Shown here piece by piece: positions 8,041 to 41,003 of a stretch of DNA of 64,000 bases. Every line of letters begins with the position of its first letter. Positions within the stretch are counted from its first letter, which is position 1. The position numbers and the translations under genes are program-made. This DNA comes from Pocillopora damicornis (lineage: Eukaryota), in NCBI RefSeq assembly GCF_003704095.1, contig NW_020845410.1:62001-126000 (forward strand), read 5' to 3'. The notes beneath the pieces are model-generated. The model had not been told where the DNA came from and made no database searches. It worked only from the letters and a program-made list of their open reading frames with translations.

Positions 8041-11000
8041 TCACACCCACGAGTCAGAGGTTGCACCTTCCCCTCCTTGTAATTTATACGTTTTCTTTTT
8101 ACTCTTATCTACACGAGCGTATGCCGGTTCTTCTTGAGGCTGTCCACCCCCGTCAGGGTAAGCCGGCGGCTCAACCGGAGGTAAAACTTGAACACCCCCG
8201 CCTCTCTCGACACCCGACCGATGATCAATTTCCCTATAGCCACCCATGTCTTCCATCTCCAACTCGTTTCGTGTGTTGTTCGGTTCTCTTCGCCGCCGAG
8301 CATCGTCATCGGCTTCGTAACCATCTTCGGAAAATCTTGGGGGTGCACTTCTTTGTTCAGGGTCATATTGAGGTTCGGGGATCGACGTTTCGTCGGATCG
8401 TATTGGCCGTGGTTCGTTCCTTCCGACAGCAGACGGCGCTCCTCTCTGCGGTCCCCGTGGCATTGTTACCTCGTCGTAAGGCCGCGGGGTAGTTGGAACA
8501 TGACCGTATTCATCTCCAATTTCTTTAGTAAATTCCCAGCCTTCTTTTTTGAGAGAGCTTCGAAGAGCTGGTAAGTTCCAAAGAGTTATTAAAACCTGTG
8601 GTGCAACAATGAAAACGGCATTTCAACACATGACACAGACGCAAAATGAAATGTTTAAGTTACGTAGAACTAATAAGCGATTTAAAAAATCAGACGACGC
8701 CTGCTTTAAAACGTGCATGAGTCCAAATCTTGCTTTTTCTCATGCAATTATGATTCATTTTCACAAAACGTTTTGCACTGAACTTCATTTCAAAGTTGAC
8801 GGTTTTAAGATCTCGAAAACTGGGATGTCAGTTCATCAAAGGCTATTTCCCCACCCCCCCTAAGTATTTTGTCATCTATCCCTGTCAATTCTTTAGAACC
8901 CATTTTCAGTCTTCAGTGGAGAGGGGTGTAGTGGTTGGCATGTACCTTCTTTTTACAGTATCAATGCATCACGTACCAAACAGGCAATAAGACTAGACAA
9001 AGTTGTCGTAATTTTACAACCAGATCATTATAGAGACTTGGCTGTTACCCAGCCCCCCAATCAATGTGTGAGAACCTCCTCCCTGGCCTCTTCCGCCAGC
9101 TCAGCCGGTAAGAGGATCATTTTTTCTACATCAACTTCAAAGAAATATCTGTAAGCTGTTGGGAGAACTAGGGTCAAATCTTGAGAGTTGAAGAGTTAAT
9201 TGCATGTTCTTTCGTACCTGATTTGCTGTTTTTACAATCCTCGGAGAGTAATGATCTCGCGACTTGGCGATCGCAATAATCTTCTGAAACCCTCCAACTT
9301 TATGAACATGTCTAAGATAAAGGGAAAAGAAAACAAAGAGACAATTAGAAAAAAAGAGAAAGACGAGGATTATCGGTCAAAGATGAAGCTGGTCATACTT
9401 GGAGAACAGTAGAACCAATGACCTTTACACTTATCTGAATGAATACAGTGACTTTTACTGGCTTACTTAGAAGCTTTCTAGACTGAATATCTAGTTAATG
9501 CCAAGAACCGTATGGAAGTGCATTGTATCGTGGATAAACCTAGTATTAATAGCATTACCTTCCATTTACTAGACTCTTATTCACGAATTGATGAATCGCG
9601 CACAGTATAGCACCAATTGTATTCTCTTCAGCTTTGACATTTAAAGAGGTGCGATGATCAGGAAGGCGATGAACCAGATCTTTAATTCCGTATTTAGCTG
9701 TGAACGAGAAGAGAAATAAAAGCATGAACAAATACAATCCCAACTGCAAAATCGAAAATACTTCGCTGCGTCTGGCATTAATTGACAGAGGTTTCCCAAA
9801 CGGTTACTTCCGAATATGTCCCCCTGTCCTTGTTAACCTCGGTGATCACTTGCAATTAGTGCTTTATCTAATAAAACGGCGCTAAACTCTACACGACAAA
9901 AAAATGAGAAAAGGTAAAAATACACACCTAAAACATCCTTGTTCCTCGGGTCGATTGCTAGATTTCTCATCGCTGTTGAAACAGCTCTCACCACAGGGTC
10001 ATGATTTATTCGTAGGAGTTCAACTAAAATGGGAAGACCCTTCTCCTTCCGTACTGCTGAGCGGACAATCATAGCCCACTGAAAAATCAATTTGTAGGAA
10101 ACAAAAAACTACATTAAACTACAAATCTCCCTTTCTCTTCGTTCGCAAAAAATCCCAAAAGAAATTCTAAGTCACCCTTTATTTAGCAGATGAAGAAAAC
10201 CACTTTTATCTCTTCGACCTCTAAGAGCGACTAACATCTGATTTCACCACATAACATCAATCCTGAATTTCACATTTAGGTCATGAGAATAGCGGAAATT
10301 ATCACCAACTAAAGAAGCTCTTGATTATTAAACACATTCTCCTTACCAGCACATAAGGAAATGTATAAAGAACAGTATGGAGAACATGCATACTACTGTT
10401 ATGGTGTGAAGGGTAAAAGGTCACGATGGAAAGTCTGTTTCTCGTTCCCCGGAGCTTCTCTTAGTTTCTGTCGCATAGAGAGATTTAGATTATTACCGCA
10501 ACCCTCTTGATGGGACGATTGTTCATCACTGGTGACCACTTGGGATTCAAAAGCTTTCCCTGGCACTCATTTATAATCCTGACAAGATGCAGATGATTGA
10601 TGCAGACGATGATTATGCCAAAGCTCGCACCGGGATATCCCAATCAAATTACGGCGCATTAAATATAAGTGAGTGACCCACCGTTTAAAGTGGAAGGAGA
10701 GTGTGTTAGCCAAGCACACACAACACGGTGATTCCACCGCATCTTCACCCTTAACTTATCACTACATTTACACTTGCAAGACATACCCTCCAGCCACATG
10801 CTGTAAGATTGTGAATAGCTCCAGCAGACGCTTCTAGTGTCTCAGGATTGGCCGCCTCCGCCATAATTAACAAGTACGACTTGACTATTTCTGGTTGCCA
10901 TAGTAACTCCACACCCTCCACTGGATCTCTCCTTATCTGTGGCTCTTCAGGTTCTTTGAGCGCTCCTTTCTTTTTCTTCTTTGATCCCGTCCCGCATCCC

Positions 11001-41003: not shown

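Follow-up and report, generated by a model that had tools for sequence, protein, structure and literature searches.

A Pocillopora damicornis delta-catenin gene with six predicted PLAT domains between its N-terminal region and its armadillo repeats

The 64,000-nucleotide (nt) stretch of contig NW_020845410.1 of the coral Pocillopora damicornis analysed here (the window, in whose numbering all positions are given) is likely to hold a single minus-strand gene, running from ~41.2 kb to ~7.5 kb, that encodes a delta-catenin (p120-family) protein of ~1900 residues with two PLAT triplets and a linker within its N-terminal regulatory region. Open, exon-sized frames of three kinds lie on the minus strand between ~41.0 and ~8.0 kb: delta-catenin N-terminal pieces (41.0-29.2 kb), twelve half-PLAT pieces together with two Y/P/T-rich pieces (26.4-15.8 kb), and p120-type armadillo (ARM) pieces (15.3-8.0 kb) that end in ...SDSWV and a stop codon. 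An earlier reading of the bare sequence (the original prediction) had assigned the PLAT and catenin exons to one gene, and RNA from four studies, in which PLAT exons are spliced to ARM exons, bears this out.

The final model, guided by conservation, comprises 31 exons and a stop-free coding sequence of 5679 nt (1892 amino acids, aa), in which all junctions are GT-AG and in phase. It grew from an initial chain of 28 exons (5454 nt) by comparison with the orthologous contig L019, which added three small N-terminal exons and a later acceptor for exon E3. Each PLAT is built from two exons, with a phase-0 intron inside the domain, after a conserved G-K, and phase-1 introns on both sides, while the donor of E4 and the acceptor of the first ARM exon (A1) are both phase 1 as well. 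In the model, ~940 residues, made up of the six PLATs and the Y/P/T-rich linker, are inserted between the N-terminal region and the ARM repeats of a protein whose predicted C-terminus is DSWV. The original prediction had described twelve PLAT-coding exons in phase with the delta-catenin exons around them; all twelve half-PLAT exons are indeed open on the minus strand with matching phases, and the four junctions it singled out (29175 to 26395, 22837 to 21987, 20983 to 20069 and 15833 to 15267) are all GT/AG and phase-matched. The DSWV end that it gave is what the final exon encodes. Its single open reading frame (ORF) of 5745 nt (1914 aa) stands as a complete, stop-free coding sequence, though not at that exact length. 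Four other assemblies contain this gene too, its exon order and strand unchanged. The orthologous loci and the exons of the model are listed below.

L001/L002: orthologue, covers the second half of PLAT1 through A9.
L018/L019: orthologue, covers E1 through A9.
L004: orthologue, covers the linker through A9.
40935..41003, minus strand: E1, start codon and start of the N-terminal coiled coil; ATG at 41003, GT donor; 79% aa identity to L019; matches bilaterian delta-catenin N-termini.
40640..40711, minus strand: E2, coiled coil; tblastn matches from ten bilaterian p120-family proteins; 96% aa identity to L019.
40464..40507, minus strand: E2b, micro-exon; conserved block of 14 codons with no amino-acid change and differing synonymous sites; AG/GT, phase fits.
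38066..38185, minus strand: E2c, N-terminal regulatory region; 85% identical to L019 at the nt level; matches residues 78-118 of a Saccoglossus ARVCF-like protein with 54% aa identity; phase fits.
30962..31080, minus strand: E2d; conserved block with a shared open frame in the two species; phase fits.
30087..30452, minus strand: E3, S/G/P-rich N-terminal region; conserved in 24 coral ORFs; strong acceptor at 30452.
29175..29300, minus strand: E4, S/T-rich linker with phase-1 donor; 68% aa identity to L019; A/GT donor conserved, acceptor tentative.
26205..26395, minus strand: PLAT1 first half; Pfam PLAT 1.1e-10; acceptor conserved in L019; 0 nonsynonymous changes in 63 codons.
25741..25924, minus strand: PLAT1 second half; second-half alignment; 98% aa identity to L002.
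24961..25148, minus strand: PLAT2 first half; first-half alignment; 98% aa identity to L002.
24271..24460, minus strand: PLAT2 second half; Pfam PLAT 6e-4; second-half alignment.
23533..23726, minus strand: PLAT3 first half; Pfam PLAT 3.4e-10.
22837..23005, minus strand: PLAT3 second half; open frame VQKLRIGHD..; 91% aa identity to L002.
21717..21987, minus strand: linker exon L1 (T/P/Y-rich); 71% aa identity to L002; no Pfam family.
20983..21314, minus strand: linker exon L2 (P/E/Y-rich); 69% aa identity to L002; 3' end joined to 20069 in RNA contigs (loose end behind 20069).
19876..20069, minus strand: PLAT4 first half; Pfam PLAT 8.8e-9; RNA joint 19358/19876.
19184..19358, minus strand: PLAT4 second half; RNA joints 18611/19183 and 19358/19876 in four runs.
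18422..18612, minus strand: PLAT5 first half; Pfam PLAT 5.1e-10; RNA joints.
17840..18017, minus strand: PLAT5 second half; RNA joints 16680/17840 and 18017/18422.
16487..16680, minus strand: PLAT6 first half; Pfam PLAT 1.8e-6; RNA joints.
15833..15995, minus strand: PLAT6 second half, donor spliced to the first ARM exon; Pfam PLAT 3.5e-8; RNA joint 15267/15833 in four runs from four studies; junction shared by L002 and L004, and phase-matched in Nematostella, L005 and the paralogue.
15126..15267, minus strand: ARM exon A1; RNA joints on both sides; 93% aa identity to L001.
14424..14544, minus strand: ARM exon A2; Pfam Arm 1e-7; PDB match to p120; RNA joint 14544/15126.
13566..13634, minus strand: ARM exon A3; RNA loose end before 14424 reads its start; 87% aa identity to L001.
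12807..12854, minus strand: ARM exon A4 (..VLWNLSS..); 100% aa identity to L001; splice scores.
11636..11911, minus strand: ARM exon A5; best solved relative human catenin delta-1 (3L6X, 5.4e-21).
10787..11140, minus strand: ARM exon A6 with a basic insert; 436 p120-family matches in the representative library; 84% aa identity to L001.
9928..10078, minus strand: ARM exon A7; Pfam Arm 2.8e-5.
9559..9697, minus strand: ARM exon A8; 67% aa identity to L001; boundaries less certain.
9218..9311, minus strand: ARM exon A8b; open frame; 77% aa identity to L001.
8041..8595, minus strand: last exon A9, end of ARM, C-terminal tail, DSWV and stop, from translation; orthologues L001, L004 and L018 likewise end in DSWV.

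RNA contigs of four runs from four studies (coral and marine metatranscriptomes) were compared with positions 14350-20349 of the window. Joints at 14544/15126, 15267/15833, 15995/16487, 16680/17840, 18017/18422, 18611/19183 and 19358/19876 were found in the contigs of the four runs. In addition, the loose end behind 20069 is the 3' end of linker exon L2 (20983), and the one before 14424 is A3. Together, the seven joints and two loose ends make the linker, PLAT4, PLAT5, PLAT6 and ARM exons 1-3 contiguous in spliced RNA, which directly confirms the predicted junctions 15833/15267 and 20983/20069. For the PLAT-to-ARM junction, the joining of PLAT6 to ARM in four independent studies refutes an artefact, whether a separate PLAT gene nested in a catenin intron or a misassembly, in which the long ORF would have arisen by chance. 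The homologous Nematostella locus was modelled as two genes in the 2007 annotation (DS469507.1), with an 804-aa PLAT model directly before a partial Arm model, EDO49843.1. However, this Arm model lacks its 5' end and starts 575 nt beyond the end of the PLAT model, with a phase-matched donor and acceptor. Moreover, the layout is common to at least five independent assemblies, and thirty consecutive in-phase GT-AG junctions are not expected by chance. An artefact is thus extremely improbable.

The same contigs bear on whether the PLAT exons are optional cassettes, such that the gene also makes a PLAT-less delta-catenin of ~950 aa (29175 spliced to 15267) or forms with fewer PLATs. This alternative is compatible with a single PLAT-carrying gene, and we consider it possible though not probable. 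Phase 1 is common to the E4 donor, all introns between PLATs and the A1 acceptor, so that any skip of a whole PLAT stays in frame; nor was any other PLAT-less p120 gene found in the genome to supply the classical form. Nevertheless, the contigs of all four runs pass straight through PLAT4-6 into A1-A2, and in two of them the linker through the ARM region is a single unbranched contig. In the other two runs, the contig depth of A1-A2 is not above that of the PLAT exons (329.6 vs 440.2 and 43.1 vs 58.7), which argues against an abundant PLAT-less isoform. No skip joint is listed among the RNA contigs, although contigs drop rare variants and a minor isoform is therefore possible. The PLAT exons are also the most conserved part of the gene.

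One RNA contig of 6423 nt has a length that fits the whole mRNA including E1-E4, a fit judged by length, its sequence having been compared within 14350-20349. It holds 2198 nt 3' of A2, compared with 1686 nt of predicted coding sequence, which leaves a 512-nt 3' untranslated region (UTR), and 2867 nt 5' of PLAT4, compared with 2635 nt, which leaves ~230 nt of 5' UTR. By length, its start falls in the conserved block 41342-41166. This block lies upstream of the start codon, is 76% identical to L019 and is probably the 5' UTR and core promoter. Elsewhere, the intron stretch 16950-17450 between the first half of PLAT6 and the second half of PLAT5 shows very high summed depth, many RNA contigs, many loose ends and odd short joints, and it resembles a repeat or transposon fragment that is transcribed. 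The possibility that the loose ends at 15899 and 17995 mark alternative exons was rejected, as they are transcripts of paralogue PLAT exons.

The link between the catenin N-terminus and the first PLAT is drawn from comparison with L019. The first exon of PLAT1 lacks an in-frame ATG, a stop codon lies immediately before its acceptor, and the exon differs from its counterpart in the L019 species by no amino acid in 63 codons, with synonymous sites saturated (proportion of synonymous differences, pS, 0.77). This constancy of the protein implies that the exon must be read in this frame and entered from an upstream phase-1 donor. E4 is 68% conserved as protein in L019, where it is also placed between E3 and PLAT1, and both its A/GT donor and the AG/CC acceptor of PLAT1 are conserved in sequence and phase. 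From these features we infer that E4 is spliced to PLAT1. A search with E3 for RNA-derived ORFs joining E3 or E4 to PLAT1 returned only genomic ORFs ending at the E3 donor.

An internal promoter upstream of PLAT1 would instead give a PLAT-ARM protein without the catenin N-terminus and leave E1-E4 to another transcript form. Such a promoter would agree with the conserved non-coding block at 28086-27898 in the E4-PLAT1 intron and with the E4/PLAT1 junction not having been observed, as it lies outside the RNA-compared stretch. It is nonetheless improbable, since the features of the first PLAT1 exon given above require phase-1 entry from a coding exon further upstream, the phase of the E4 donor and of the PLAT1 acceptor is conserved, and the 6423-nt contig extends 1148 nt beyond PLAT1, which fits E1-E4 (916 nt) plus a short 5' UTR. 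The block itself (27898-28086) is 78% identical to L019:12670-12857, a conserved non-coding element; it was ruled out as an exon by stops in all three frames. Within the same intron of the orthologue, L019:14034-14858 carries a reverse-transcriptase ORF (RVT_1, weak) that is absent from the window.

The identity of the inserted modules was examined by database searches run exon by exon. Pfam PLAT (PF01477; curated cut-off 23 bits) was found in 8 of the 12 half-PLAT pieces, half-domain exons scoring 29-43 bits (maximum 42.7), with first halves covering profile positions 1-68 and second halves 49-114. When the six first halves are aligned, Y, K.G and G..G.T are invariant, and the same is true of H-D, E-E-V, F-P and W in the six second halves. 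The frames are open, and the six intact PLATs with HD..G, EEV and FP...W motifs of the original prediction are thus recovered. Profiles of the PLAT halves match the solved PLAT domains of coral 8R-lipoxygenase (7e-8), Rab6IP1 (6e-11) and polycystin-1 (6e-4), which indirectly supports a predicted beta-sandwich PLAT fold of ~120 residues. Lipoxygenases, polycystin-1 and Rab6IP1/DENND5 share these modules, but they carry one PLAT beside an enzyme or channel, whereas the coral protein has six arrayed in a junction adaptor. PLAT beta-sandwich modules bind lipids or proteins (PMC8051682). The linker exons L1 and L2 (20983-21987) contain repeated E-E-x-R-Y-x-T-T-P-like and P-P-P-x-E-Y motifs, are ~70% conserved and have no Pfam match; they could be a tyrosine-phosphorylation or SH2/WW docking region.

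The flanks of the PLAT array are those of a delta-catenin. Pfam Arm (PF00514) was found in two ARM exons, A2 and A7, and the PDB ranking for A5 places human catenin delta-1 first (3L6X, 5.4e-21), followed by plakophilin-2 and plakophilin-1. The ARM domain is p120-type, nearer to p120 and the plakophilins than to beta-catenin, and the ARM region is 40-52% identical to named delta-catenin and ARVCF proteins over ~480 aa. At the N-terminus, E1 and E2 align with residues ~28-86 in ten bilaterian members of the family, and E2c with residues 78-118 in Saccoglossus. The DSWV end is shared by the window protein and the orthologues L001, L004 and L018, and the paralogue described below ends in DLWV; DSWV is the PDZ-binding end of delta-catenin, ARVCF and p0071. 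The assignment of the flanks to delta-catenin in the original prediction therefore holds for the N-terminal coiled coil and the ARM region, which match bilaterian delta-catenin and ARVCF, for the best solved relative, human p120, and for the C-terminus. The ..VLWNLSS.. motif is present in A4, and a PDB search with this short frame gave no alignment. An ESM Atlas search with the last exon gave only a chance-level match (0.76).

Long p120-family proteins of the representative library, including Saccoglossus ARVCF-like, Ptychodera catenin delta-2-like and shrimp plakophilin-4 (P0037), align only to model residues ~8-62 (coiled coil) and 1176-1815 (ARM and tail), never to the PLAT part. Likewise, the PLAT and linker part had no match among ~50 long p120-family representatives, and a Pfam scan of seven of these found Arm only and no PLAT. 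In the search with A6 against this library, the cnidarian matches were genomic exon-sized ORFs only and the full-length proteins bilaterian only; a 1927-aa match from this search (P0039) was rejected as an unrelated low-complexity sequence. With shrimp plakophilin-4 as a long query, the best 120 matches were all arthropod. Comparing the coral protein with the bilaterian delta-catenin subfamily (CTNND2, ARVCF and PKP4/p0071; p120ctn in invertebrates), it becomes clear that the N-terminal coiled coil, ARM region and DSWV C-terminus are alike, whereas the coral protein has ~940 extra residues, the six PLATs and Y/P/T-rich linker, before the ARM region.

Sequence divergence from L001/L002 gave ratios of nonsynonymous to synonymous change (dN/dS) of 0.035 for the PLAT exons (668 codons), 0.053 for the ARM exons (460 codons), 0.118 for the linker (189 codons) and 0.126 for the tail (176 codons), ratios that are rough because synonymous sites are near saturation. 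For PLAT1-3 compared with L019, the proportion of nonsynonymous differences (pN) is 0.026 and pS is 0.707. The PLAT exons are plainly under strong purifying selection, with constraint at least equal to that of the ARM domain. The original prediction had proposed a check at other delta-catenin loci; the same layout is present in other corals, and the PLAT-to-ARM arrangement is present in Nematostella, in the orthologue of the paralogue.

That paralogue was found by searching the genome (234.35 Mb in 4393 contigs, G000), in which only two loci match ARM exons A5 and A6, the window gene and C3130:134-139 kb; this search with A5 and A6 found no PLAT-less p120 gene. In the second p120-family gene (G000:C3130:134126-161845, minus strand, loci L010-L015), the ARM exons are immediately preceded by exactly 15 pairs of PLAT exons, and the C-terminus is EDLWV. 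This gene is transcribed, as RNA contig ends (the loose ends at 15899 and 17995) match C3130:149758 and C3130:157510. It has orthologues at L005, at L016/L017 and, in Nematostella vectensis, at L003. The Nematostella locus of EDO49843.1 and the adjacent PLAT model resembles the window gene in that its p120-type ARM exons follow immediately on same-strand pairs of PLAT exons, with donor and acceptor both in phase 1. However, it is the orthologue of the 15-PLAT paralogue rather than of the window gene, and its annotation as two genes left the fusion unrecognised. The PLAT-bearing protein is thus not a one-off but reflects an old family trait.

Phylogenetic trees are consistent with a common origin of the two genes. 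In the ARM tree, the two types group together in a single clade (100/98), apart from 24 other family representatives. In the PLAT tree, the PLATs of the window gene and the paralogue intermix, window PLAT1 pairing with paralogue PLAT1, and in the part of the Nematostella locus retrieved, five of the six PLATs each pair with one PLAT of the paralogue (numbers 10 and 12-15), while the remaining one lies within the same clade. The donor of the last PLAT and the acceptor of the first ARM exon are phase-1 matched in the window gene, the paralogue, L002, L004, L005 and Nematostella. This junction, shared by both genes in corals and Nematostella, implies that the array was acquired before the gene duplication and before the anemone/stony coral split. 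The simplest history would have a p120-family gene gain its PLAT array once and then duplicate, with both events preceding the divergence of anemones and stony corals.

The tandem arrays also invite comparison with LOXHD1, which has 15 tandem PLAT repeats in mammals and is a stereocilia protein needed for mechanotransduction (PMC8051682). The arrays are of similar sequence type, and the C3130 paralogue also has exactly 15 PLATs. However, LOXHD1 consists of PLAT repeats only, whereas the coral array sits inside a catenin with an N-terminus, ARM region and tail, its PLAT exons being spliced to ARM exons. At G000:C294:50800-73800 (minus strand, L021-L023) lies a PLAT-only array, ~15 domains in tandem, whose introns vary in position and which has no ARM exons close by; it is possibly the LOXHD1 counterpart. 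In the PLAT tree, which compared the catenin PLATs with this array and included no named LOXHD1 sequence, the C294 array splits from the catenin PLATs (Shimodaira-Hasegawa-like approximate likelihood ratio test, 94). The comparison with LOXHD1 in the original prediction needs amending in this respect: the window PLATs group with those of the paralogue and are not closest to the LOXHD1-like array of the genome. More than 50 single-exon, full-length PLAT matches were also observed on other contigs of the genome (e.g. C14, C601, C1535, C4019 and C3735), in open frames of ~450-500 aa that are often clustered on one contig; these would make up a large intronless PLAT-containing gene family.

Several points weigh against reading the region as one gene for a PLAT-bearing delta-catenin. 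The junctions E4 to PLAT1 (29175/26395) and PLAT3 to linker (22837/21987) and those of the N-terminus lie outside the RNA-compared stretch and are predicted, not seen in RNA; the fit of the 6423-nt contig and the dN/dS ratios carry the limits given with them. The coding sequence is 66 nt shorter than originally predicted, the difference falling in the N-terminal part, so at least one N-terminal boundary is uncertain. A coding sequence that skips all PLATs and the linker is also in frame and free of stops, and contigs are unable to exclude minor isoforms. The protein libraries searched contained no full-length cnidarian models. Finally, any tethering of lipids, a channel or a partner by the PLATs is extrapolated from other PLAT proteins. 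With these points taken into account, the PLAT-array delta-catenin is well supported at gene and transcript level as a real and old variant of a known family, predating the anemone/coral split.

What such a protein would do can be suggested from its relatives. The p120 and delta-catenins control the stability of cadherin junctions in all animals studied. By analogy with bilaterian delta-catenins, the ARM groove would bind the juxtamembrane tail of classical cadherins and the DSWV end would bind PDZ scaffolds. PLAT beta-sandwiches elsewhere bind membrane lipids, often with Ca2+, or partner proteins, and the PLATs here may add several weak contacts with the inner membrane leaflet or a membrane protein, which would hold or cluster the cadherin-catenin complex at the membrane. 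Since no PLAT-less p120 gene was found, the protein is probably the ordinary junctional delta-catenin of the coral and not a cell-type-specific extra. A role in junctions generally seems more likely than the one in hair bundles or cnidocytes first proposed, which would be a candidate localisation only. A bolder and rather doubtful conjecture is that all p120-family catenins of anthozoans, and perhaps of cnidarians as a whole, carry PLAT arrays (six PLATs in the delta-catenin orthologue, 15 in its sister), so that junctions would be coupled through PLATs to lipids, Ca2+ or a membrane partner, a link not known in bilaterian junctions; the 15-PLAT sister could then be a cadherin-bound counterpart of LOXHD1 in mechanosensory bundles.

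No description of PLAT/LH2 domains in a catenin was found in the literature searched, including the main comparative catenin papers, in keeping with the original remark that no such catenin was known; current RefSeq models may already contain the fusion without comment. The p120 architecture of coiled coil, regulatory region and ARM has been treated as invariant in comparisons concerned with the origin of epithelia, which used partial cnidarian models, and the Nematostella 'p120' database model is the truncated half of a larger gene. The gene is also a naturally occurring example of a new adaptor built by phase-1 exon shuffling, and PLAT-mediated tethering of junctions to the membrane or to a partner is a testable hypothesis. 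Anthozoan junction catenins appear to be built differently from all described ones, and the large transcribed PLAT arrays of both coral p120-family genes change the assumed look of the cnidarian cadherin-catenin complex.

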